Virus record (IMG/VR): IMGVR_UViG_3300023202_000383
Span: 1 to 64,000 of that record
Direction: 5' to 3' (one strand)
Length of the DNA: 64,000 nt
Positions 29,233 to 46,803 of the stretch are shown here, in pieces; within the stretch, counting starts at the first letter, position 1; each line of letters opens with the position of its first letter. The notes under the pieces were generated by a model. That model ran no database searches, was not told the origin of the DNA, and worked only from the letters and a program-made list of their open reading frames with translations. The position numbers were made by a program, and so were the translations under genes.

Positions 29233-29991
29233 ATGGCTAGAGAGTTCTTTGATACTGTTGCTACTAAAGCTGGTTTGGCTGGCGAATATGAAGAACTAAT
29301 TGAGTCTGAATTCGCCGCCTCGGCTGGACCAGCGTATACGCCCGGCGAAGATGGAATTTTTAGGGTAGTTGCCTCTAGGACAATTCAGTTATTGAAGGGT
29401 AGTCCAATCTATGTGGAGACTTTTCAGGACTCTGCTGCCACCCTACGAGTTCCGTCTGGGCTAATAGCAAGCAATGATGCCAACGATGGTAGATTTTATT
29501 TTGTCAAGAACAGCGGAATTGGGAATGTTGCATTACAAGATCACTTAGGTGGATCTTTGGCGGCAATCCGTAAAGGTCAATTTGTTGTTGCCCTACATGG
29601 AGATGATGATAATTGGGATGCTTCTGGGTTGCTTAGTTCCGACGCCGTCGTCGAAGTCAAGAACACGTTGACGACCACGGACACACTGCTGAACACGATC
29701 GCCACGATCGACGTCGACCCCAGCACCGTACACCATCTGGACGTGACGATCACGGCGCGGGAGGGCGACAATAATAGAGGGTCGTTCGTGCGTAAGGCCA
29801 CGATTTACCGTAATTCGACGGGCGGGGCAGCAATCGAGAATAACGTAATCGTGGTATTTGACGAGAGCAGCAGCGGTAACTTTAAGATAGCTGTCGTGGC
29901 GAGCGGCAACAGCATACTCATTCAGGTTCAGGATGAGCAGGGGCAAACGGTGAACTGGACCAGTTGGCACAAACTCTACTCACAGGCGTGA
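29233..29991 (+). CDS. putative fibre/structural protein, chimeric (AT-rich 5' half, GC-rich 3' half)
   Basis: Codon composition switches abruptly near 29640 with no break in frame. Confidence 0.65.
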   Translation: MAREFFDTVATKAGLAGEYEELIESEFAASAGPAYTPGEDGIFRVVASRTIQLLKGSPIYVETFQDSAATLRVPSGLIASNDANDGRFYFVKNSGIGNVALQDHLGGSLAAIRKGQFVVALHGDDDNWDASGLLSSDAVVEVKNTLTTTDTLLNTIATIDVDPSTVHHLDVTITAREGDNNRGSFVRKATIYRNSTGGAAIENNVIVVFDESSSGNFKIAVVASGNSILIQVQDEQGQTVNWTSWHKLYSQA

Positions 29992-29992
29992 C

Positions 29993-30634
29993 ATGATTAC
30001 CGGCATCACACAATTCGGGTTGGAGGGGCGTGTAGCAACGGTGGATCACGACCCGGCTATCGTGTCGACCGATGTCCCCGCAGGTTCGATTATCCTGTCG
30101 ACCTCCACAGGATTGCTCTACCGAAAACTCACCGGCGGCAGCAACACGGATGTGTTGCCGATGACCGCTTCCAGTCAGCCGTTCGATTGGGACAGCGGGG
30201 CGTCGGCGGTCGCGGCGGTCGTCGCGGCCGGGATGCTGTCGCTCGAATTGCTTGCCGATACCGACTCGAAGGTAGTCGGCGGCGACGTTGCCCCGCTGCA
30301 CGTCGACCTCGATCAGGCGTTGGAGCTTGACGTCAAGATCGTCACCCTCAGCTTGGGCGACGCGTCGGCCGACGCGCACCTGCGGCTGACGGCCCGCTAC
30401 GTGGGGTTGGGCGAGGCGGCGGACAAGACGCCCGACGAGACGATCGACCACATCTTTGAAGTCGCCAACGTAGATAAGTGCGTGCACGCCGTGACGTTCA
30501 CACTGGACCCGTCGCTTATCTCCCCCGAAGACCTGCTAAACCTGGAGCTGTCGCGGCTGGGCACGTCAGCGAGTGACGTGTTTACCGGCTCCATCGGCGT
30601 TGCCGAGAGGTCGCTGCTGAGGTTCTTTAACTGA
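29993..30634 (+). CDS. putative structural (beta-rich) protein in GC island
   Basis: Coupled to neighbours; high GC3. Confidence 0.65.
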   Translation: MITGITQFGLEGRVATVDHDPAIVSTDVPAGSIILSTSTGLLYRKLTGGSNTDVLPMTASSQPFDWDSGASAVAAVVAAGMLSLELLADTDSKVVGGDVAPLHVDLDQALELDVKIVTLSLGDASADAHLRLTARYVGLGEAADKTPDETIDHIFEVANVDKCVHAVTFTLDPSLISPEDLLNLELSRLGTSASDVFTGSIGVAERSLLRFFN

Positions 30635-31164
30635 TGGCAAGCACGTACGAACTGATACTGTTCCGCGAGGAGACCCGAGACGACGGGAAGGTGGCGTTGC
30701 TGCGTATCCCGTTGGTGGCCGGTGCGGGGATCGACCTCGACGCGGTGATCGGGGAGGTATCCGCCGGTAGCGGTGTGAGCGTGCAGGAGGGATACGCCGA
30801 GAGCGAAGGGACCAGTTCGACGACCAGCACCAACTTTCAGCAAAAGCTCCGCGCCAGCTTGACGGGTCTAGACGCCGGTACGTATGAGGTGGCGTGGTCT
30901 TGTGAGGTGTTGCCCGGCAAAAACAATCTGGCTGCCCGCGTGCGGGTTCAAGTGGATGACACGACGACGCTAAACAGCCCTGACCCGGTCCTCAATCGAG
31001 ACAATAGCGGGGGCAACGTGAAGGGCTGGATGCCTCTCAGTGGGTTCCGTCAATTGGCATTGAGCGCCGGGGATCATGACTTCGACATCGACTTTGCTTC
31101 ACCTCAGAACGGAAAGTCAGTAGATATCCGGTTTGCGCGTATCAAAATAGCGAGGACAAATTAA
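30634..31164 (+). CDS. putative structural/fibre-tip protein in GC island
   Basis: TGATG coupling; beta-sandwich-like composition. Confidence 0.65.
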   Translation: MASTYELILFREETRDDGKVALLRIPLVAGAGIDLDAVIGEVSAGSGVSVQEGYAESEGTSSTTSTNFQQKLRASLTGLDAGTYEVAWSCEVLPGKNNLAARVRVQVDDTTTLNSPDPVLNRDNSGGNVKGWMPLSGFRQLALSAGDHDFDIDFASPQNGKSVDIRFARIKIARTN

Positions 31165-32106
31165 GTGGCCGAGCAAGCATACACGTACAGCATCGCCAGC
31201 GACTTCCCGTCGGGCGCGGTCAACACGCAGAAGCTGCACGACGAGGTCGTGGCCGACACGGCGATCACGACGCAGCTCGACCGCATCGACACCGACGGCG
31301 ACGGCTTGTCAATCGTGTTTCAGGCGGCGCTGTCGGCGGCGGAGAAGACGGCGCTGGACGGCGACACGACCGGACCGGCCGGGGGGCTGATCGCGCAGCA
31401 CGACAACAGCGCGTCCGCCCCCGACTACGGGAAGATGCAGATCGACGGGATCTCCCCGGACGCCAACGGCTCGCTGCCGCAGGCCCCGATCATCTCCACG
31501 CCGGGCCACCGGCTCAACGACCGCGACGTGCTGGTGCGGGTGGGCGAGTTCGACAACCCGTTCGAGGACCTGCGGGTCAACCCCGACGACAACAAGGAAG
31601 TGGCGTGGGGCGAGGTCACGTGCGACCCGGCCGACACCGATCCGGCGAACAAGACCGGGGTATTCAAGCTCGACGGCAACGGCGACTGGGTCCGCTGCAC
31701 CGACCAGACCGACGCGGCCGCCAACGCCGGGCTCACGGTCCTGGAGTACCAGGCCCGGCAGGGCGGCGTGGCCGGGGGCGATGCGCTCAAGTACGACGTG
31801 CGGGGCGGGACGCTGTGGGTCGACTCCAACGTGCCGGACGACGGCGACCGCTGGTCGCACCGCGTCTATTCGGTCGGTGCCCCGGACCTGTCGGCCGTCC
31901 TCGGCGGCCGGGTGCCGTTCTTCGACGGTTACCTGTTTCCCTATCGCAACAACTGGATGCAGACGCTCAATCCCGTGGCGTTCCCGATGGATCCGTCGGC
32001 GTCGGCGGCGGCGAGCATCGTCCGCGTGTGGTTCTATTACAAGGCGGGCACGGCGTACGAGCACGTGCTGCGGTTCCACCTGTACCGACCGACCGGAAGC
32101 TGGTAG
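31165..32106 (+). CDS. putative structural protein in GC island
   Basis: GTG start directly after the upstream stop; very high GC3. Confidence 0.7.
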   Translation: MAEQAYTYSIASDFPSGAVNTQKLHDEVVADTAITTQLDRIDTDGDGLSIVFQAALSAAEKTALDGDTTGPAGGLIAQHDNSASAPDYGKMQIDGISPDANGSLPQAPIISTPGHRLNDRDVLVRVGEFDNPFEDLRVNPDDNKEVAWGEVTCDPADTDPANKTGVFKLDGNGDWVRCTDQTDAAANAGLTVLEYQARQGGVAGGDALKYDVRGGTLWVDSNVPDDGDRWSHRVYSVGAPDLSAVLGGRVPFFDGYLFPYRNNWMQTLNPVAFPMDPSASAAASIVRVWFYYKAGTAYEHVLRFHLYRPTGSW

Positions 32107-32118
32107 GGTTTCCCATTC

Positions 32119-32190
32119 ATGAAGCTAATATTCTGCCCAGACTGCCGGGACGTGTTTAAGCTAGTCCGCGATGAGCCCCGTAAATGCTGA
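32119..32190 (+). pseudogene. truncated N-terminus of a small Zn-binding protein (MKLIFCPDCRDVFKLVRDEPRKC)
   Basis: CxxC...C start that stops at the island boundary. Confidence 0.5.
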
Positions 32191-33529: not shown

Positions 33530-33702
33530 AAGACGTCGGCAAAGCCAAACTGGAATCAGAGAAAGCTTTAACTGAGTATCTAAAATGCCAGCAAGAACTG
33601 CTGGTAATGATCAATAAACAAATGGATCTGGGAAGAATCTACGCTGAGAAGAGAGCCGAATATTTGGCTTTGAAAGAAGATAATGAGCCAGGAATTGATT
33701 AA
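33526..33702 (+). CDS. small helical hypothetical protein (58 aa, absent from the ORF track)
   Basis: GTG overlapping the upstream TGA; open to TAA at 33702. Confidence 0.45.
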   Translation: MKDVGKAKLESEKALTEYLKCQQELLVMINKQMDLGRIYAEKRAEYLALKEDNEPGID

Positions 33703-35327
33703 GGTTTCAATATAAATTTATAATGTCCAGCATCCCACAGTCTTCTATATTTATTATTAAACATATTTTCGGCCTCGGTAAGACGCGAGTCGAAATTTTC
33801 TAGTAATTTTGATAATTTGTGTTTTTGAAAGTGTTGGCGAGAATACAATATCGATGTGTTGCCGTCTTTATAATATTTATAATTTGGCTTAGTTAAACCG
33901 CATGGTTTGAATCCTAATTTTTTATATAAATTTCCTGTCGAATATCTTGCGTCTGCATATGTTAAAATTGATTTTGGGTCATGTAATGCTATAAAATGAT
34001 TTAGTAGTTTTCCTGCTCCCCCGATAGCTGTTGAACCTATAGCTTGTGCGTATCTTATTATTTCCCATTTATATTTATGGTGCTTGGCAAAAGACATGCA
34101 TGCGACTAATTCTCCATTATATGTTAATCCAATTCTTACCGATGCATCCCGCGATCCATATATATGGTTTTCAGTCATAAATGAATCGTAATCTTTTGTG
34201 TTCAACGATATTATTTTACATTTTCTGGCGTATAATTTTGATGAATACCCAAGTTTATGATTTATTATTGATTTGACTATATTTTGTTTGTTTGACCATT
34301 CGTCCTCGTTTATTTGCAGAAGTTGTATATTGTTTTCTACGCATCTAGTATGTTTAGCTTGATGTTTAAATCTTTCGTCTTTTGATTCAGTATGGTTGTA
34401 TGAATGGTAATATAACCCATTATATTCGATAGCTACGTTATGATTTGGCAGATAGATATCGATTTCTAATGGATATATTGTCTTTCTATCGTTAATAATA
34501 TATTCAGTATTTATCGATTTTATATATTCTATTATTTCTTGGTGTGGTTTAGAAATCGAGTTAGAGCATTTAGGGCATCCGTGTCCGTTTAAATGATTAC
34601 TTACTGTTTGGGAAAAATTGCCGTGTATGATACATGTTATTGTGATTGGTTCCATGTACCCGCTGTAATTGGATTTGTCATATGAATATTTGTCGCCGTG
34701 GATCGATATTGCTCTATTTATTATATCTTCTGTTGTAGGTGTGTTTATTGCACATTTAGGGCAACCGTGGCCTTCGAGGTGCCTTCTGGTTAATTGTTTA
34801 AATTTGCCATGTTTCGGGCATTTTATTATTATGTGACTTCGATATGATTTATATATCGAATCGCTATAATCATATTTGTTATTGTGTAATTTTGATGATT
34901 TATTTATAAAATCGTCAATTGTATTACTTAAATTTTTTATTCCGCATAATTTGCACCCATACTTTCCGTAGATGTGTGATTTTGGTGTTTGTTCGAATTC
35001 GCCGTGTTCTGGGCATATTATTGTGATTTTTGTATAGCTATTGACATACTCAGATTTACTATAATCATACTTATCGCCGTGCACTAATGTTGCTTTTTCT
35101 ATAAATTTATTTAGTGGCAATTTAAGATTTTGTTTTTGTTGTTGCCTAAAACATTTTTTGCATCTTGCGCCTTTTTTGTGATTTCTAGCGCGTTGTCTAA
35201 ACTCTCCGTGTTCCGGGCATATTATTGTGACGCGTCCGCTCAATTCAATTTCTGTAACCTTTGAATAGTCATACTTGTTATTGTGTATCAGGGATGATTC
35301 ATGTATAAAGCGTTGTAATTTATTCAT
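33699..35327 (-). CDS. Hef-like free-standing endonuclease: DUF723-type Zn repeats + Vsr/EDxHD nuclease + Mom/GNAT-like domain
   Basis: Four KYDYSK...ICPxHGxFxQ...CxxC repeats; EIDIYLPNHNVAIEYNGLYYH; GGAGKLL..LTYADARYS.G.LY..LGF. Confidence 0.8.
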   Translation of the reverse strand: MNKLQRFIHESSLIHNNKYDYSKVTEIELSGRVTIICPEHGEFRQRARNHKKGARCKKCFRQQQKQNLKLPLNKFIEKATLVHGDKYDYSKSEYVNSYTKITIICPEHGEFEQTPKSHIYGKYGCKLCGIKNLSNTIDDFINKSSKLHNNKYDYSDSIYKSYRSHIIIKCPKHGKFKQLTRRHLEGHGCPKCAINTPTTEDIINRAISIHGDKYSYDKSNYSGYMEPITITCIIHGNFSQTVSNHLNGHGCPKCSNSISKPHQEIIEYIKSINTEYIINDRKTIYPLEIDIYLPNHNVAIEYNGLYYHSYNHTESKDERFKHQAKHTRCVENNIQLLQINEDEWSNKQNIVKSIINHKLGYSSKLYARKCKIISLNTKDYDSFMTENHIYGSRDASVRIGLTYNGELVACMSFAKHHKYKWEIIRYAQAIGSTAIGGAGKLLNHFIALHDPKSILTYADARYSTGNLYKKLGFKPCGLTKPNYKYYKDGNTSILYSRQHFQKHKLSKLLENFDSRLTEAENMFNNKYRRLWDAGHYKFILKP

Positions 35328-35397
35328 AATAAAATATCTTTGATTACAGATAGATCCTCTGCATTGCGTGTTGTATTTTATATACATGGTTGACATA

Positions 35398-36747
35398 ATG
35401 AAATATAATGGTCCTACAGACTTTGCTCATCTTCATGTCCATACTTTATATAGTACGCTTGATGGGGTTCAATCTCCAGAAGAATTGTTTTCTACGTGCA
35501 AAGAAAGAGGATGGAGTGCGTTAGCCGTAACCGAGCATGGGACATTGGCATCAGTCCCAGACAATTATGCGGCTGCAAAAGAATACGGCGTAAAGTATAT
35601 AGTTGCTTGCGAAATTTATTACAATGATTATGAACCGACTAGGCAAGATCTTGTTAAAGAAGATGTTAAAATTCGCAAGCTAAAAGAAACCGACCCTAAT
35701 TTTTATTATAAAATGTCTAGAAATAGGCATTTAACAGTCCTTGCTAAAAACGATAAGGGTGTGGAGAACATAATAAAATTGACCACTCAAGCGTGGGAGA
35801 CTGGATTTTATTATAGGCCGAGGATATGGTTTGATAAATTAGATGAATATAGAGAGGGTTTATTGGTATTGAGTGGATGTTTAAATGGGCCTGTTTCTCA
35901 TGAGTTAAGACATGGGAATTTAAGGTCTGATGATATGAGAGGTGCATTAGACTATATACATAAATTCAAAGAAGTATTTGGCGATGATTATTTTGTAGAA
36001 TTGCAGATGCCTTGTCTTCCTGATTTTCCTGACCACAAAGTCTTCCGTGCATTAAATCATATAGCTAACAAGTACAATATACCGAAAGTTCTTACAAATG
36101 ACGCACATTATCTAAATCGTGAAGACTTTGAAATCCAGAAATTAATGATGGCTATATCCCAGGGTTTAACTGTTGATGATCCGAATCTGTTCCATGTAAA
36201 TAGTGATGAGCAATATCTTAAAACCAGAGCAGATCTATGGCACACATTTAAGACTGGGAAAGACGGCAAATATTGTGAATATGTGACTGATAGCGAATTT
36301 GAAGATATGTGCAACAACACATTGGTAGTTGCCGGTAAATGTGATAATTTCGAACCTGATTTGTCGTCGAAGGTTCCTACATTAGATAATGACGAGCAGA
36401 TCTTAAGAACCCTTGTGTACGATAGGCTTAAGCAAGAGGGATTCGATAAAGATGAAACTAAGTACAATATAGACAATAAAGAAGTTACTTATAGAGAACA
36501 AGCCGACATAGAATTGAATAGGTTTATTGAGAAGAATTTCGCCAGCTATTTCTTGATAACCAGAGATTTGGTGCAGTATAGTTTAGATAACGGTTGGCCT
36601 GTTGGACCGCGAGGTTCAGTTGGCGGCAGTCTAGTGTGTTATTTATTGGGCATAACCGAGTTGGATCCAATAAAATGGAATTTATCGTTTAACAGGTTTT
36701 TAAGCCCCTCGCGCGGAGGAAAGATGCTAAACATTAAGGCAGAATAG
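35398..36747 (+). CDS. dnaE: DNA polymerase III alpha, fragment 1 (PHP domain + N-terminal palm)
   Basis: HLHVHTLYSTLDG, TEHG, NDAHY, YFLIT, GPRGSVGGSLV, RFLSPSR, then stop. Confidence 0.9.
   Translation: MKYNGPTDFAHLHVHTLYSTLDGVQSPEELFSTCKERGWSALAVTEHGTLASVPDNYAAAKEYGVKYIVACEIYYNDYEPTRQDLVKEDVKIRKLKETDPNFYYKMSRNRHLTVLAKNDKGVENIIKLTTQAWETGFYYRPRIWFDKLDEYREGLLVLSGCLNGPVSHELRHGNLRSDDMRGALDYIHKFKEVFGDDYFVELQMPCLPDFPDHKVFRALNHIANKYNIPKVLTNDAHYLNREDFEIQKLMMAISQGLTVDDPNLFHVNSDEQYLKTRADLWHTFKTGKDGKYCEYVTDSEFEDMCNNTLVVAGKCDNFEPDLSSKVPTLDNDEQILRTLVYDRLKQEGFDKDETKYNIDNKEVTYREQADIELNRFIEKNFASYFLITRDLVQYSLDNGWPVGPRGSVGGSLVCYLLGITELDPIKWNLSFNRFLSPSRGGKMLNIKAE
36728..36746 (+). repeat. direct repeat flanking the inserted endonuclease gene (partner at 38604-38628)
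   Basis: TAAACATTAAGGCAGAATA here; the partner reads TAAACATTAAG-ATTAAG-GCAGAATA. Confidence 0.85.
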
Positions 36748-36777
36748 GTCTAATTCAGTTATAAGCAAATATATAAT

Positions 36778-38613
36778 ATGATAAATGTACAACGAAGCAA
36801 AGAAGTGTTTGGATTAAAAAGCATCAATAGGATTCCTAAAAAACAGAAAGTTATATGTAATTGTGATGTTTGTGGGGTTGAATCACGTATTACTAAGCAG
36901 CACCATTATATATGCAGCAAACGTGCTGGTTTATATAGATGTAAAGATTGTGGTAGAAAAGCCATGGCATCTAAAGTATCAAAAGCCATGATATCAAAAT
37001 GGCAAAACGACAAATACAAATCCAAGCAGATTGGCAGGACTCATAGCGATGAATTAAAGGAATATGCTAGGCAGAGAGCTATCAAATTGTGGAAAGATAA
37101 AGAATATGTGGCAAAGTATAATGCTGGGTTTGACCCGGCCAAGGCTAGAAAGAATCTAAAGGCCACCAGATCGGTTGCCAATAAAGCTGCATCGCTTGCT
37201 ATGGCTGATAAATGGCAGGAAAAAGAATATCGCAGTAAAATGTCAGATCAATCAGCTAAGCTATGGAGTAACGATTGTTATAGAAACAAAGTAATAAGTA
37301 GCCTCAAAAAACATTATTCGTCATTAGAAGTTTTAGATAGATGTTCAAATAGAGCGAAAAAATTGTGGAAGAATAATGATTATAGGGATAGGTGGTTCAA
37401 ATCATTTATGCAATCATTTGGCAATGAAAGGTTACACGAAATTTCATTACAAAGTGCCAAGAATTGGGGAGACCGAGAATATAGAGATAAAATAGAATCA
37501 CAATGGGACGATCAAAAACGTGCAGAAATGTCCGAAATATGTAAAGAATGGTGGACTGATGATAGGAGAGCTGAAGTTTCTGAGATTATGATAAGTAGGT
37601 GGTCGGACCCTAATTTTAGAAAGAAAACAATAAAAGCATTTATTGATTCATGGACTGAAGAACGCAGGCAGGCTGCTAAAGATTCATGGACTGAAGAACG
37701 CAGGCAGGCTGCGTCTGATAGATCCAGGAATTTGTGGAAAGATCCGAAATATGTTAGCAAGATGGTTGATATGATCGGGAGGCCGTCGTCTTTAGAAATT
37801 CAATTCGCCAGCTTATTGGATGATTATGGCATCGAGTACACGCAACAGTTCCATTTAGGGCCATATTTATTTGATTTTAAGGTCAACGATGTCTTAATAG
37901 AAATTAATGGCGATTATTGGCATAGATTGCCGAAGACAATATCAAAAGACAAGGCTAAAGCTACTTATGTTGAAAAACATTATCAGCAATATCAGCTTAA
38001 GTATTTATGGGAGCATGAATTTTATCAATTAGAAAAGATTAATAAATTTATTGAATTCAGTTTTGTTGGTTCTGACGTAGAAGAGGTTGATTTTTCAGAA
38101 TTAAAATTTGTTACTGATATAGATTATGATTCAATAAAATCGTTAATTGAGAAATATCATTATAAAGGAAGTATTGGTCGGGGTGGGGTGTATTATGGTG
38201 TTATATATCGTGGTAATTTGATCGCTGGGTCTGTTGTTGGGTCACCAACTAGGAATGTTGTTGGTGGCGAGTTGTTACGATTTGTTATACACCCACAGTA
38301 TCAGGTCAAGAATCTTGCATCGTGGTTTTTGAGTAGAATCTCAAAGCATGCTTTGAGAGATTATGATTTATTGTTTACATTTGCTGATCCGAATTTTAAC
38401 AATTACGGCACAATATATGAGGCTAGCGGCTGGGAATTTGCTGGCGAAACAAAATCAGATTATTGGTATGTTAGCGAAGACGGTTGGGTTATGCATAAAA
38501 AGACTTTATGGAATAGAGCAAAGAATTTATGTATGTCAGAAAGGTATTTTGCTGAGGTTTTTGGATATAATCGGGTATATGGGTTGCCAAAGAGAAAGTA
38601 TATTAAACATTAA
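36778..38613 (+). CDS. free-standing endonuclease: helical W-repeats + DUF559/Vsr-like nuclease + Mom-like GNAT domain
   Basis: PSSLE...FDFKVNDVLIEINGDYWH; ELLRF...NLASWFLS...TFADPNFNNYGTIYEASGW. Confidence 0.8.
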   Translation: MINVQRSKEVFGLKSINRIPKKQKVICNCDVCGVESRITKQHHYICSKRAGLYRCKDCGRKAMASKVSKAMISKWQNDKYKSKQIGRTHSDELKEYARQRAIKLWKDKEYVAKYNAGFDPAKARKNLKATRSVANKAASLAMADKWQEKEYRSKMSDQSAKLWSNDCYRNKVISSLKKHYSSLEVLDRCSNRAKKLWKNNDYRDRWFKSFMQSFGNERLHEISLQSAKNWGDREYRDKIESQWDDQKRAEMSEICKEWWTDDRRAEVSEIMISRWSDPNFRKKTIKAFIDSWTEERRQAAKDSWTEERRQAASDRSRNLWKDPKYVSKMVDMIGRPSSLEIQFASLLDDYGIEYTQQFHLGPYLFDFKVNDVLIEINGDYWHRLPKTISKDKAKATYVEKHYQQYQLKYLWEHEFYQLEKINKFIEFSFVGSDVEEVDFSELKFVTDIDYDSIKSLIEKYHYKGSIGRGGVYYGVIYRGNLIAGSVVGSPTRNVVGGELLRFVIHPQYQVKNLASWFLSRISKHALRDYDLLFTFADPNFNNYGTIYEASGWEFAGETKSDYWYVSEDGWVMHKKTLWNRAKNLCMSERYFAEVFGYNRVYGLPKRKYIKH

Positions 38614-38628
38614 GATTAAGGCAGAATA

Positions 38629-39015
38629 ATGGATAAGAATCAGATTAAGTTAGGAATAACATCTATACAGCGATCCGTTGTTGTGTGCAATAGGTTGGGG
38701 CTGTTTGAAGCAGCGTCGGCTGCTGTTTACAGTATGATAGATGCTATAAACGCTTTGGTAGAAGGCAACGAAGAAACTGCTGCTGAAGATTGTTTCAAAT
38801 CATCGTTTCTGATATATAAGGTTTTGTACGAATCATTTTCTGAAAAGTTTGAGAAGAGATCCAGTCTAGCGGAAGACGCGGAGAAAATTCTGAAAGAATC
38901 CAATGATTGGAATGCATTTGCAAAAGCGTCCAGTAATTATATGGATGCAATAGCAGAGGTTGTACATGGAACGGAATTCGAGGCCGAATTCTTGAAATTT
39001 AAAGTTGGCTCCTGA
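38629..39015 (+). CDS. hypothetical helical protein between dnaE fragments
   Basis: TAATG-coupled start. Confidence 0.65.
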   Translation: MDKNQIKLGITSIQRSVVVCNRLGLFEAASAAVYSMIDAINALVEGNEETAAEDCFKSSFLIYKVLYESFSEKFEKRSSLAEDAEKILKESNDWNAFAKASSNYMDAIAEVVHGTEFEAEFLKFKVGS

Positions 39016-39496
39016 TAAAATAGACATATATTGCTTTGCTAGAGGCAAGGATAGTCCATACGCATATGGCATCCTTGTGGTCGCACATTATGGCGAAGAG
39101 TGTAAAGAGCACGAGAAATTTGGTTTCGTAGATGCGAAAACGCCTACTGAGGCCAATATCAAGATAATATTGATGGCGTTGAAGTCCGTTAAAGATGACT
39201 TTAAGGACCTCGATATCACTCTTCATGTAAGAAAATCTGCATTTTATTGTGTTGATAGAACATCTTGGGGAACCTATAGAACAAAGCCAACCAGACATCA
39301 TAAACTGATAGGTGCGGTGAGAAGTTTGTTTGACGAGCTTCCTAATGCAAGATCAAAGATGATATTCTCCAAATACCAAAAGTATGCTAAAAGATGTATA
39401 AAAAAGTCTAGGAGCATGTTTCATGCGAAACGACGCGAGTTGGGACGATATAAAGGTGATAGCGGTCAAGGAGCTCGTCCAGAAAAAGCTACCTAA
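39005..39496 (+). CDS. RNase HI-fold protein, catalytic acidic residues lost
   Basis: IDIYCFA (for IYTDG), YGILV, TPTEANIKIILMAL, ITLHVRKS (for TDS). Confidence 0.5.
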   Translation: MAPDKIDIYCFARGKDSPYAYGILVVAHYGEECKEHEKFGFVDAKTPTEANIKIILMALKSVKDDFKDLDITLHVRKSAFYCVDRTSWGTYRTKPTRHHKLIGAVRSLFDELPNARSKMIFSKYQKYAKRCIKKSRSMFHAKRRELGRYKGDSGQGARPEKAT

Positions 39497-41192
39497 CGAG
39501 TATAAGTCTAGATTTAAGACAGAAATAAAAGAGATCGAAAAGCAAGGTGCCAATGCCTATTGGCAGCAGCTATATAACGAAGATCACAAATACGACACGA
39601 ATAACAATGGTTTGGTCTTGCCCTGGATATTAGGCATGACCGATGTTGATCCTTTAAAATCAGACCATCAATATACAAGGTCGACGGACTGGCCTGACAT
39701 AGATGTTGACTGCTTACCGACAGCCAGAGATAGGATCAAAGAATATGCTGCAGAGAAATATGGCAAAGACAAAGTCTGTAGCGTAGGGTTGTGGCAGACA
39801 TATAAATTTAGGTCAGCATTACAAGACTCTGTTAGAGGTGTTGGTGGTAATGTCAAAGAAATCATGGACATCACTAAGCAGTTGCCGGATGATGTTGACG
39901 ATCTGAAAGATGGTGGTTTTGCAAAGTGCACTGAATGTAAAACGAAGCATAATGAGCATAAATGCCCAGAATGTGGATCAACAGAAATAGATGGGATCAC
40001 ATTTGGGAAGGTGATAGAAGATCATGAAGAATTAAAGAAATATTATGGAGAGCATCCTAAAGAAGTCAATCTAGCCGTTAGAATGATAGGAAAAATAAAA
40101 GCGCTGGGTAAACACGCTGGCGGCCTTATTATATCTGATAGAGTGCTATTCGGAAATGTCCCTATGGGCGTTTCAAATGGCCATTGGACAAGTTTGTGGA
40201 CTGAAGGCAGGAGTACTCAATTATCTAAATTCGGGTATATTAAGTGGGATATGCTTGGCCTTAAAACTTTGCAGTATATTCATGAGTGCTGCAAATTAAT
40301 CAATAAAACCAGAAATTACAAGTTTAATGTTATTCCATGGAAAGGAATGGACCCATGGGAAAACTGTCTTGGATACTATTGGGATAATAATGGCGTAAAA
40401 CACAAAGTGAGGATGGATGACGAAAAAACCTTTGAGATGATGAACGCCATAAGGACCGATACAGTATTCCAATTCGACACGGCACTGCAGAAGAAGATTT
40501 TAGAAAATGGCGTAAACAGCTTTTATGATTTACAGATATTTAATGCAATGGGCCACCCAGGTCCGTTGCCAATGATCGATGAGTATGTAGCTCGACGTGA
40601 CAATGAGGACTACGATTGGAAGAGCGAGGAGCATCCTGATGTTGCATCGTTGCTTAAAGACACAAAGGGTATCATAGTATATCAGGAGCAATTGCAGAAG
40701 ATCTGGCAACATTTGGCTAAATTCACGGCTCCCGAAGCTGAATCTGCGAGGAAGGCTGTTGCTAAGAAATGGACGGAAAAACTAAAGCCTGTTGAGGAGA
40801 AGTGGGTAAGGGGCGCATCTAAGATAATGGGCGAGCGGCGGGCTAAAGATTACTGGGGGAAGATGAAAACTTTCGGTAGGTATGCCTTCAATAAATGCCT
40901 GGACAAAGATACTATATTAGAAGATCCTACAAATGGCAATACTATAACTGTTGAAGAGCTTTTTGAATCTAAATCGAGCTTTAAATTAGAATCTTATTGT
41001 GATGATGGATTTGTGGTCGATGACGTTGATGAGATAATCGAATGCGGTGAACAAGATATTTATGAAATAGAATTAGATAATGGGGCGATTCAGAAAGTCA
41101 CTTTGAATCATAAGTTTAGGTGCGATGATGGAAAATACTGGACAGTCAAAGAAATCATCGAAGGCAATTATTCCATCGTGGTTCGACCATAA
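39423..41192 (+). CDS. dnaE: DNA polymerase III alpha, fragment 2 (catalytic palm/fingers) fused to N-half of split intein (40896-41189)
   Basis: WPDIDVDC, GKHAGG, IKWDMLGLKTL, IVYQEQ, YAFNK|CLDKDT...KVTLNHKF. Confidence 0.9.
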   Translation: MRNDASWDDIKVIAVKELVQKKLPNEYKSRFKTEIKEIEKQGANAYWQQLYNEDHKYDTNNNGLVLPWILGMTDVDPLKSDHQYTRSTDWPDIDVDCLPTARDRIKEYAAEKYGKDKVCSVGLWQTYKFRSALQDSVRGVGGNVKEIMDITKQLPDDVDDLKDGGFAKCTECKTKHNEHKCPECGSTEIDGITFGKVIEDHEELKKYYGEHPKEVNLAVRMIGKIKALGKHAGGLIISDRVLFGNVPMGVSNGHWTSLWTEGRSTQLSKFGYIKWDMLGLKTLQYIHECCKLINKTRNYKFNVIPWKGMDPWENCLGYYWDNNGVKHKVRMDDEKTFEMMNAIRTDTVFQFDTALQKKILENGVNSFYDLQIFNAMGHPGPLPMIDEYVARRDNEDYDWKSEEHPDVASLLKDTKGIIVYQEQLQKIWQHLAKFTAPEAESARKAVAKKWTEKLKPVEEKWVRGASKIMGERRAKDYWGKMKTFGRYAFNKCLDKDTILEDPTNGNTITVEELFESKSSFKLESYCDDGFVVDDVDEIIECGEQDIYEIELDNGAIQKVTLNHKFRCDDGKYWTVKEIIEGNYSIVVRP

Positions 41193-41920
41193 AATTATAA
41201 GCTACAATGATAATATAAAAAGTAATGATACAATAAAATCAATATGTTCAATATGCGGCGATAAAACAAGTAGAAAATTTATCGAACATAAAAGGCTGTG
41301 CAATAGGCAATCAAGATATGTTAGCTCATATCGGTGCCGGTCTTGCCTGACAAAGTCAGATGATTACAAAATCAAAATAAAAAAAGCTGAATTCGACACA
41401 GATGCTATGAGTAAGAGGTCAAAAAAGCATTGGGCTAATTTATCAAAGCACGATCGTAAGGCATTAACTAGCAAGATAACAGCCAAATTAAGAACTGATG
41501 CTGTAAGAGAAAAAATTAGCAAGTCTATAAAAGAAAAATTTGACGATCCAGATTATATTCGTAAAGTTTCGGAGGCGAGAAAGAAATATTGGGAAAATTA
41601 TGAATATAGGAAAAATAGGACGTTATCGATAGATGAATTTATAGAGAGATCTAAGTCAGTTCATGGCGATAAGTATGATTATTCGAAAGTTCAATTCGAT
41701 TCTGCCAGGAATTCTAAAGTTGATATTATATGTCCAGATCATGGTGTCTTCCGACAAAGACCGTTATGGCATTATTTGTATGGTAATGGGTGCCCAGATT
41801 GTTAGACAAGAATTCCAAAAGCACAAACTTAGCGGTAAATTAGACAATTTTGATAGTAATTTGACTGAACTACAGAATATGTTCAATAATGGATATAGGG
41901 TGGGATGCTGGACACAATAA
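41125..41920 (+). pseudogene. internally deleted Hef-like endonuclease remnant between the intein halves
   Basis: ORF 41125-41805 has W-repeats and one DUF723 repeat, then stops; 41805-41920 in another frame reads RQEFQKHKL...LTELQNMFNNGY, the family's C-terminal end; nuclease and GNAT domains are absent. Confidence 0.7.
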
Positions 41921-41922
41921 AT

Positions 41923-43071
41923 ATGAATGGAAACGTAGCTAAAATAAAGTCTATAAAATATGTCGGTAAAAGAAGATCATACAACATATGTATGGAATCT
42001 AGCCAACATAATTATTTAATAAAACCATCTAGCGGGCAACCTATTCATAAAAATTCCCATAGCATAGGCTATATAACGGAGGCATATTGGTGTGCATGGT
42101 TAAAGGCTCACTTTCCGCCAGAATGGTGGGCGTCTGTTATGAGTTATTGCCACCATGTGAGACTCAAGAGATACATGAATGTGGCAAGGTCTGAGGGCGT
42201 TAAATTTGGTCCTATAAATATAGAGGACCTGTCACCATATTATTCAGTCGACCCAGAGACGCATAAAGTCACTCCTGGTCTTATAAGCATAAAGGGGATC
42301 GGCCAGAAAGCTGCAGACAAACTGTCTGGTAAAGGAAAGTATGATAATATAGATGATTTCGTGGATAAATTTGGAAAAGACAAAAGGGTGATGGAAAGAT
42401 TGATACTTCTTGGTGCTTTTCAGAAATACCACCCAAATATAAAAGCCACTTGGATTTGGTACCAATATAAATATTGTAGTGGCGCTGCCTCTAGAGAAAT
42501 CAAGAAGCACATTAAGTCTGAACTGCTGGCTGACTGGACCGATGAGAGAATTGAACAAGAACGCAAAAGACAGGCGGATGAATATTTTAAATTGTATCCA
42601 AATAGGCGTAAGCTTCCGAATAAGATAGCCAACTGGAATCCTAAGCCTGATGATACAAGAGAAAATGTTATGGCATTGATAGAAGACGATTATGCTAATG
42701 CCGAAAAATTCAATTTTGAAAAGGAATATCTAGGGTACTATTGGAGGAATCCAATAGAATATTTTAAGACTGATTCAGATAATACAATTATAAATGCCAA
42801 GAAGAATGGTGGGGGGTTCATAGATGTAGTGATAGAGTCTTTCGAAATAGCGGAGACTCGCAAAGGAGGATTATTCGGCAGGTTGGCAGTAATGGATGGC
42901 AGCACAGCCTGTAACGTATACATGTGGGAAGGCGAGCTCGATGCCTCTGAGAGCTTCATCGATGACGGGATAGGTATTAGACTAAATGTTGATTATAACG
43001 ACGGAAGAAGGACATTCTCAGTCAAGAGAGGATCAGTTCCTGTGATACTTGAGATGTCTGAGGACCAGTAG
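41923..43071 (+). CDS. dnaE: C-half of split intein (41923-42054) fused to DNA polymerase III alpha fragment 3 (HhH + OB)
   Basis: KIKSIKYVGKRRSYNI...IHKN|SHSIGY..AYWCAWLKAHFP; GLISIKGIG; EKEYLG. Confidence 0.88.
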   Translation: MNGNVAKIKSIKYVGKRRSYNICMESSQHNYLIKPSSGQPIHKNSHSIGYITEAYWCAWLKAHFPPEWWASVMSYCHHVRLKRYMNVARSEGVKFGPINIEDLSPYYSVDPETHKVTPGLISIKGIGQKAADKLSGKGKYDNIDDFVDKFGKDKRVMERLILLGAFQKYHPNIKATWIWYQYKYCSGAASREIKKHIKSELLADWTDERIEQERKRQADEYFKLYPNRRKLPNKIANWNPKPDDTRENVMALIEDDYANAEKFNFEKEYLGYYWRNPIEYFKTDSDNTIINAKKNGGGFIDVVIESFEIAETRKGGLFGRLAVMDGSTACNVYMWEGELDASESFIDDGIGIRLNVDYNDGRRTFSVKRGSVPVILEMSEDQ

Positions 43072-43593
43072 ATGTTAATTGATACAGACAAACTATGCTG
43101 TGATTATTGCGGGGAGATATTAGATGGGGATTTCTATTATTATTCGTTTGATTTTAAGGAAATAAATGTCCAAAACATGGCTGTGTCTGTAAAGGATGGC
43201 ATATTTAGTGCTGATGTATGCAATGATTGTATGGAATCCTACAAACAACGAGTAAAGCAAGCATATAAGCCACCTGACAAAGACGCAATATATTGTGACA
43301 TATCGGGCGAAAAATTGTCTGGCAATATATTATACTATTTGTGTATCATAACGCGCGTTGATGTGCGTTTTAGCGGAAAACTATATTACTGTGAAGTATG
43401 TAAACAAAATAAGAAAGTAAGTAACATCCCCTGTGAAGAATGCCCAGAAAATCACCAATTAACAAGAAATGCAGATGTCAAAAAAGATGAAGAGCATTTT
43501 GAATTTAATTTTAGCAAACAAATGTATGATTTGTTTGTAAATCATGTCGACATCATTAAGAAAAGAGGAATAGAAGAATGGGCGAAGATATGA
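43072..43593 (+). CDS. Cys-rich zinc-binding hypothetical protein
   Basis: Several CxxC pairs arranged as an internal repeat. Confidence 0.7.
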   Translation: MLIDTDKLCCDYCGEILDGDFYYYSFDFKEINVQNMAVSVKDGIFSADVCNDCMESYKQRVKQAYKPPDKDAIYCDISGEKLSGNILYYLCIITRVDVRFSGKLYYCEVCKQNKKVSNIPCEECPENHQLTRNADVKKDEEHFEFNFSKQMYDLFVNHVDIIKKRGIEEWAKI

Positions 43594-45990: not shown

Positions 45991-45993
45991 ATG

Positions 45994-46803
45994 ATGGAAA
46001 AAAGATGCATATTTAGTGGTAGCACTGAGAATTTAAATACTTCTATGAACATAATTGTTGATGGTGAAACAGTGACGTGTTTTATATCTGATGAATATGC
46101 AGAAGACGCTACAATAAAGAGTGTCAAGGAGGCATACGCAGCCAGGCAGCATAAAATAGAAGAGCTCAAAAGACAAGCCGAGGAATTGGGCATTGTTATA
46201 GGTGATGATGCTGCACAGAAGCAAGCTGGTATGCAGCCACAGCAGCCACAGCAGCCACAGCAGCCACAGCAGCCACAGCAGCCACAGCAGTCACAGCAGT
46301 CACAGCAGCCACAGCAGCCACAGCAGCCACAGCAGCCACAGCAGCCAGAAGTCGATCAAACAGGTATGGTCGATGCGAAGGTGGCCGATGGTAATTTAAT
46401 TGATCTATCTAAAGTAAAATCCACATCAAATGTTGGTGGCCCGCAATCTCAATATGCCATAGAGTCTATAACAGAAGCGTCTGAAGATTTAAAAGAAGGC
46501 GAGAAGGCTAGGATTCAGAATGTTGAAGCTCGGAAGGGGTTAAATGTCCCGATACCAGTGGAGAGAGTTGGCAAGACTGGCACTACTAGAGTTAAGATTT
46601 CTAAATATTCAGATGCTGAATTGCAGAATAGATTTAAAAAGATGGCAGATGCTACTCAGAGCGATCAATTTGAAGGATATAGCAGATCATATGAGGTCAG
46701 GCTATCTAAGTGCCCATTGTGTAGAGGTAGTGGGACGGTTAAGAATAGCCAGGTGTGCCCAAAATGTGGCGGTGCTGGCGAGATAGAAGTGCATCAATTT
46801 TAA
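45994..46803 (+). CDS. hypothetical protein with QQP repeat and C-terminal DnaJ-type zinc finger
   Basis: CPLCRGSG...CPKCGGAG. Confidence 0.75.
   Translation: MEKRCIFSGSTENLNTSMNIIVDGETVTCFISDEYAEDATIKSVKEAYAARQHKIEELKRQAEELGIVIGDDAAQKQAGMQPQQPQQPQQPQQPQQPQQSQQSQQPQQPQQPQQPQQPEVDQTGMVDAKVADGNLIDLSKVKSTSNVGGPQSQYAIESITEASEDLKEGEKARIQNVEARKGLNVPIPVERVGKTGTTRVKISKYSDAELQNRFKKMADATQSDQFEGYSRSYEVRLSKCPLCRGSGTVKNSQVCPKCGGAGEIEVHQF
46234..46347 (+). repeat. 9-bp tandem repeat CAGYCACAG x12 plus partial (QPQ/QSQ)
   Basis: Read directly from sequence. Confidence 0.95.

Follow-up and report, generated by a model that had tools for sequence, protein, structure and literature searches.

Introduction

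Fractured genes, in which a split intein carries a free-standing homing endonuclease gene between its two halves, were described by Dassa et al. (2009; PMC2677866). That paper reports three DnaE loci, each with its own site and none at the cyanobacterial one, together with gp41-1, NrdJ-1, and IMPDH-1; it assigns the endonucleases to a Vsr-like family and proposes endonuclease loss and unlinking of the halves as later steps. Residue-level positions of the three DnaE loci are not given there, and Novikova (2015) names the fingers-domain sites a–d and g without a residue-level position. Here, we analyzed a locus of this kind in the window, a 64-kb stretch of DNA that forms the first part (positions 1 to 64,000) of the 256.5-kb IMG/VR virus record IMGVR_UViG_3300023202_000383 (GC content, ~41%), which IMG/VR classes as a provirus that is ~70% complete. 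The locus is very probably a naturally split class 1 mini-intein in the fingers domain of a DnaE-type polymerase, in a fractured-gene arrangement carried by a large (at least 256 kb), uncultured phage.

The split DnaE inteins of cyanobacteria, such as those of Ssp and Npu (PDB 1zd7, 2keq, 4kl5, and 7qil), interrupt the same conserved motif of the same host protein. Their split point is similar, with an N-terminal half (IntN) of ~100 amino acids (aa) and a C-terminal half (IntC) of ~36–50 aa, and they also lack the penultimate His. They differ from the window intein in that they are inserted at Y|CFN, four residues upstream of FNK|S, and are followed by Cys+1 instead of Ser+1; in addition, their halves are genomically unlinked, are not accompanied by an endonuclease, and retain the block F Asp. 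Cys-Phe-Asn is the C-extein start of the cyanobacterial DnaE intein (PMC3585056), in agreement with the first-pass annotation of the window, made from the DNA alone, which had placed the cyanobacterial site a few residues earlier than FNK|S. With respect to the catalytic residues, the title of reference 87 in PMC4031507 states that Ssp DnaE splices without a penultimate His; PMC4031507 treats inteins splicing without this residue as known and terms the block F positions F:4 (usually Asp) and F:13 (usually His) "less conserved." The Cys1/Ser+1 combination is common and is used by gp41-1, and the cyanobacterial DnaE inteins cross-react among themselves.

Three DnaE pieces and the extein junction

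The only DnaE in the 256.5-kb record is one DnaE-type polymerase encoded in three pieces, all on the + strand. Piece A (35368..36747) contains the PHP domain together with the first part of the palm (Pfam PHP, 1.8e-40; DNA_pol3_alpha positions 8–98). Piece B (39423..40895), the N-extein, contains the remaining palm and the fingers (Pfam DNA_pol3_alpha, 6.5e-27; DNA_pol3_finger, 7.8e-32) and ends in ...FGRYAFNK; together with IntN, it forms a single open reading frame (ORF) at 39423-41192. Piece C (42055..43071), the C-extein, starts with SHSIGY... and contains the helix-hairpin-helix and C-terminal domains (Pfam HHH_6, 2.8e-9); its ORF, including IntC, spans 41905-43071.

The junction was defined using a relative, the 341-kb phage contig L002, in which B and C are uninterrupted as a single 838-aa ORF with the motif YAFNLSHS. 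Pieces B and C were compared with the L002 DnaE separately. The window N-extein is 65% identical to it and aligns through residue 496, with K491 falling opposite L497, and the C-extein is 68% identical, with the alignment running from residue 498 onward. The exteins therefore abut at L002 residues 497|498, and taking out 98 + 50 residues leaves neither a gap nor an overlap. The two halves lie on separate ORFs with one extein each and jointly restore the uninterrupted host motif, as is characteristic of a naturally split intein. The first-pass annotation had proposed a split DnaE intein at FNK|SH whose splicing would restore YAFNKSH; its coordinates and motifs proved exact, and the restored junction is that of the uninterrupted L002 protein.

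Over 40700-42200, four assemblies (one SRA run plus three Joint Genome Institute metagenomes) were 100% identical, and because of this identity the structure is not an assembly error; the window itself may derive from one of the four. An intron in place of an intein was also considered and was rejected, as an Rfam scan of 35000-43500 found no family reaching its gathering score and hence no Rfam intron.

The other break, between pieces A and B (36747-39423), contains neither an intein nor an Rfam intron. It is located between the palm start and the PDIDVD catalytic motif and is conserved in L002, where four small ORFs intervene. The first ~90 residues of piece B map to Pfam DNA_pol3_alpha positions 11–98, as does the end of piece A, and the start of piece B and the end of piece A show a weak likeness around ..LGITELDP../..LGMTDVDP... 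This overlap may be a partial duplication that aids assembly of the pieces.

The intein halves

IntN (40896..41192, + strand) is 98 aa long. Its Cys1 codon, TGC at 40896-40898, immediately follows ...YAFNK, block B reads T69-L-N-H72, and the stop codon is at 41190-41192. The half scored 28.9 bits against TIGR01445 intein_Nterm, a curated NCBIfam model with a cut-off of 24.5. In a single-sequence search of the PDB, DnaE inteins were the best matches (2.5e-5), and the profile of the IntN family matched solved structures of DnaE inteins at 1e-11 to 3e-7.

IntC (41905..42054, + strand) ends in ...P-I-H-K-N (H48-K49-N50), with the Asn codon at 42052-42054 followed by S-H-S, and shows a weak match to the Npu DnaE IntC. 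It is 50 aa long when read from the ATG at 41905 and 44 aa long from the ATG at 41923. Since the ATG at 41905 lies inside the endonuclease tail remnant described below, the true start may be at 41923, as in the relatives; their IntC is 37–42 aa long, to which the 44-aa version is nearer than the 50-aa version, and a length of roughly 44 aa was also what the first-pass annotation had given. Promoter-like sites around the IntC start were not above chance (9 versus 6.5 ± 2.7 in shuffled sequences), and RNA structure upstream of IntC was nothing unusual (z = 0.25).

The residues that define a class 1 intein are in place, with Cys1 directly after the N-extein, a block B Thr-x-x-His, and an Asn-Ser junction (N50|S51). 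Cys1, Thr69, and His72 are invariant in six IntN relatives, and the block F His at F:13 (QHNY), the His at position −2, the terminal Asn, and Ser+1 are kept in all 36 distinct IntC relatives. Together with the TIGR01445 score and the exact extein abutment, this conservation goes far beyond chance.

Association of the two halves was evaluated using a two-chain model, which predicted docking with an interaction prediction score from aligned errors (ipSAE) of 0.76, compared with 0.00 for the best of three controls; a score this high was attained by 51 of the 78 solved complexes and by 2 of the 108 mismatched pairs. At least 74% of the contacts were common to the runs, the predicted local distance difference test score of the partner was at least 58, and the predicted interface on IntC comprised residues 9–44.

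A truncated homing endonuclease between the halves

A 226-aa ORF (41125..41805, + strand) lies between the halves, and its start overlaps the 3′ end of IntN by 68 nucleotides (nt). An intact ortholog of 514 aa occupies the same position in relative L003 (L003:3437-4981). A tblastn search of the window with this ortholog located its residues 7–227 at 41143-41802 (51% identity; E value, 5e-72), its residues 468–500 in the +1 frame at 41804-41902 (76% identity), and, as a weak match, its residues 500–509 in a third frame at 41895-41924, and no match in the window was obtained for residues 228–467. Since residues 7–227 and 468–500 are present and residues 228–467 are absent, an internal out-of-frame deletion of ~720 bp is indicated, and the TAG stop codon at 41803-41805 sits at its junction. 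The C-terminal tail remnant (41804..41924, + strand) is out of frame with the 226-aa ORF and is itself distributed over two frames; a second frameshift, as read from these alignments, lies in the tail.

In an alignment of nine orthologs and paralogs, the missing part holds the conserved nuclease block, with a Mom/GNAT-like region behind it, and what is left in the 226-aa ORF is only the DNA-binding-type N-terminal part, which matches positions 184–428 of 576 in the phrog_681 "endonuclease" profile. The profile of the nine-sequence alignment matches I-Bth0305I (PDB 3r3p; E value, 2.3e-6). This family profile was the only route to I-Bth0305I, and searches of Pfam, NCBIfam, and the PDB with single endonuclease sequences gave little; a Campylobacter paralog matched Pfam Vsr and MTES_1575 weakly, below their cut-offs. 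The Vsr-like/I-Bth0305I catalytic nuclease domain is thus present in the paralogs and orthologs and missing from the window copy. On the basis of these alignments, the 226-aa gene is a truncated Vsr-like homing endonuclease of the I-Bth0305I type ("Hef-like"). The first-pass annotation had described an intervening gene that lost its nuclease domain, and the absence of ortholog residues 228–467 bears this out.

Like the I-Bth0305I/Vsr-like ("Hef-like") endonucleases, the intact ortholog and the paralogs in the record have a nuclease block that matches 3r3p, and the C-terminal tail is common to Campylobacter phage Hef-like genes. The phage copies differ in adding a Mom/GNAT-like C-terminal domain, and the 226-aa copy differs in lacking the nuclease block. 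Among GenBank phages, the window had no close DNA relatives, and the only matches were ~110 nt long, to the 3′ ends of Hef-like homing endonuclease genes of Campylobacter phages; these matches are due to the tail remnant.

States of the insertion site in relatives

A word search with piece C retrieved 36 further proteins, most of them of equal length and with the same IntC, and at least 36 distinct metagenomic relatives carry the same split. The states of the site were counted over contigs and IMG/VR loci. The site is uninterrupted, reading FN[K/R/L/A/V]SH, in ~30 loci and is split with a full endonuclease in ~10 loci, including L003, L004, and L011. The split accompanied by a decayed endonuclease was found in two loci, the window and L009; in L009, the nuclease is gone and N-terminal fragments are kept in a remnant that is itself frameshifted. 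One locus (L006/L025) has 3.8 kb of unrelated small ORFs between the halves, and in two loci (L010 and L019), one half is present and its partner is not nearby. The same site is also split in L030, which belongs to a more distant DnaE lineage, and in L031, where the half begins with Ser. A scan of bacterial and archaeal genomes with the alignment of extein plus IntN returned one contig of a metagenome-assembled genome, which matched in the extein only.

The intact endonuclease allele that the first-pass annotation had suggested seeking in related genomes was recovered, the 514-aa gene of L003 being one example, and its reading of the locus as a fractured gene whose free-standing endonuclease has decayed agrees with both the arrangement in PMC2677866 and these orthologs. 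Full endonucleases occupy this position in L003, L004, L011, and others, and the ORF at 41125-41805 is their ortholog in truncated form. As in the fractured genes of Dassa et al., all parts lie on one strand, a phage replication enzyme serves as the host, and the endonuclease is Vsr-like, with an ORF that overlaps the 3′ end of IntN. The endonuclease loss and the unlinking predicted there are both found among the relatives of the window. The difference is that the window endonuclease has been caught as an internal-deletion remnant.

The locus adds one more clean case to an arrangement that has been known since 2009; it is not a new type of element, and the understanding of inteins is unchanged by it. 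It provides a complete and well-bounded fractured gene, in which one contig carries the two exteins, the two intein halves, and an endonuclease remnant that can be dated, and its relatives span each stage from the empty site to unlinked halves. Such a series can serve the study of how homing endonucleases decay after fixation and of how split genes turn permanent, and the at least 36 diverged Cys1/Ser+1 pairs are a candidate source of split inteins.

Further insertions were observed in the same DnaE lineage. In close relatives (L003:1-3549 and L009:1-3695), the same domain, the fingers, holds another split intein, inserted at GHPGPIA|C and accompanied by a full endonuclease; slightly upstream is a third site, at which P0037, a protein from another relative, carries an IntC. 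These additional sites bring the number of split-intein sites in this phage DnaE lineage to at least three. IntN-like halves also end ORFs of another phage gene, which is AAA+/clamp-loader-like, after VVVLDE|C (L065:4501-4836, L054, L075, and L079). Their core is the same ..GEQ(E/D)VYEIELxNG..C(T)xxHK.., and this type of intein is therefore common to several phage replication genes.

Proposed splicing and the fate of the remnant

In the most likely mechanism, IntN, translated as part of the piece B ORF, and IntC, translated as part of the piece C ORF, would dock into one Hedgehog/intein (HINT) fold. Cys1 would form the thioester, Ser+1 would accept the N-extein, and Asn50 would cyclize, so that the product would be a contiguous B-C polypeptide with YAFNKSHS; piece A presumably associates with it non-covalently. 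The gene between the halves would derive from a free-standing Vsr-like homing endonuclease that formerly spread the element. The ~720-bp deletion would have removed its nuclease and Mom/GNAT-like domains, with a second frameshift striking the tail, and the remnant would no longer cut DNA; the split would now be merely inherited. We infer that B and C are indeed spliced with somewhat less confidence than we have in the identity and anatomy of the intein.

Several observations weigh against splicing. The penultimate His (G:6) is Lys in the window and Lys, Arg, or Ala in the relatives, the invariant His standing one position earlier (−2). The block F position aligned with the Npu DnaE Asp is Asn in the window and Ser, Asn, or Ala in the relatives, never Asp. 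The break between pieces A and B is already tolerated non-covalently in this lineage, so covalent ligation of B and C is not logically required, and the docking score may partly stem from solved split-intein complexes that the model had memorized. The same points would suit intein halves that no longer splice and act as a tight non-covalent dimerization module for pieces B and C, since neither the penultimate His nor the block F Asp is present, the lineage already runs its DnaE with an intein-less break, and the model predicts docking, whereas the chemistry is beyond prediction. Nevertheless, such a module is very unlikely, because Cys1, the block B Thr and His, the His at F:13, the terminal Asn, and Ser+1 are invariant among relatives that are only ~40–55% identical, and association alone would not need these residues; the splicing of Ssp DnaE without a penultimate His, as that title states it, points in the same direction. 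The ending of IntC was called non-canonical in the first-pass annotation, which is correct in that Lys replaces the penultimate His; a non-His penultimate residue together with Ser+1 is not unusual, however, considering Ssp and Npu and the common Cys1/Ser+1 combination.

The endonuclease remnant is presumed to be functionless. It might instead have been kept as a protein that binds DNA, such as a regulator or a shield of the former target site against intact paralogs. The ORF is open over 226 codons up to the deletion junction at 51% identity to the ortholog, the record contains at least seven paralogous endonuclease match regions besides a 611-aa copy, and L009 has likewise lost the nuclease and keeps N-terminal fragments. 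We consider retention unlikely, as the stop codon lies exactly at the out-of-frame deletion junction, which looks accidental, and the L009 remnant is itself frameshifted. An explanation of the whole locus as an artifact or a dead gene, with the breaks arising from assembly errors or the polymerase being a pseudogene of a defective prophage, would find some support in the provirus class and the incompleteness of the record. It is hardly credible given that the four assemblies are identical over the region, that each of the three DnaE pieces is a long open frame matching Pfam strongly, and that dozens of diverged phage contigs have the same architecture.

Relation to other DnaE inteins

The window site, FNK|S with Ser+1, is not the cyanobacterial allele (Y|CFN with Cys+1). 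The first-pass annotation had taken it for an independent site, and it is indeed distinct from the cyanobacterial one; it is not new, however, since contiguous mini-inteins occupy the identical FNK|S site in Rhodococcus phage NiceHouse (MT521992; 150 aa) and in MT835601 (142 aa), a gut-phage contig from a fecal sample, and the split is common in IMG/VR phages. These two inteins share the insertion FNK|C...N|SH, Cys1, and Ser+1 with the window intein and are homologous to the IntN family by hhalign (E values, 3.5e-4 and 8e-7). In contrast to the window intein, they are uninterrupted, end in the canonical T-H-N (NiceHouse) or in T-C-N (MT835601), and have kept the block F Asp.

A different position also does not show that the intein is unrelated. 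With the IntN family profile, the cyanobacterial DnaE inteins scored 37–48 bits, the best among solved structures, whereas the contiguous inteins at the same site scored 27 and 12 bits at the same database size. By these scores, the FNK|S family appears nearer to the cyanobacterial inteins than to its contiguous site-mates. A stronger proposal is that the split DnaE inteins of cyanobacteria have the phage FNK|S family as their specific sister group or source pool and that the His-[Lys/Arg/Ala]-Asn end of this phage family, without a block F Asp, reflects a variant form of assistance; taken jointly, these two ideas are rather unlikely to hold. If they did, the phage series would preserve the route to the cyanobacterial split, from a full to a decayed to no endonuclease and on to unlinked halves. 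The His-[Lys/Arg/Ala]-Asn end and the missing block F Asp may mark a variant assistance of Asn cyclization, and the family could yield a new, possibly fast Cys1/Ser+1 tool intein. That the window halves might form an orthogonal pair, as had been suggested in the first-pass annotation, is conjecture, and their likeness to the mutually cross-reacting DnaE inteins, if anything, argues for caution.

Other endonucleases and features of the record

An intact 611-aa endonuclease paralog (36778..38613, + strand) adjoins the stop codon of piece A. It contains a zinc-finger and repeat region, a Vsr-like nuclease, and a Mom/GNAT-like domain (Pfam Mom, 6e-12), and it aligns with the other full-length endonucleases. 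Approximately 30 nt of the 3′ end of piece A, with the stop/start overlap known from L002, are repeated just after this paralog (36748-38632), and the repeat looks like a footprint of its insertion. Another intact copy, of 565 aa (33699-35396, − strand), lies immediately upstream of DnaE and was found via the repeat motif of the remnant. This 565-aa gene is included in the at least seven match regions counted above, and further Vsr-like/Mom-like endonuclease matches are located near 63.5, 75.6, 111.4, 191.2, 243.5, and 247.1 kb of the record.

Two further features of the window were observed. An island of ~2.2 kb at 29900-32150 has a GC content of 64%, compared with 38% for the genome. Its three ORFs (29993-30634, 30634-31164, and 31165-32106, all on the + strand) had no match in a PHROG scan, and the island may be either a foreign acquisition or an assembly chimera. 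The ORF at 45991-46803, whose PHROG matches are weak and to families of unknown function, encodes an extended (QPQ)n repeat and, at the C-terminus, a zinc motif of the CxxCxGxG type.

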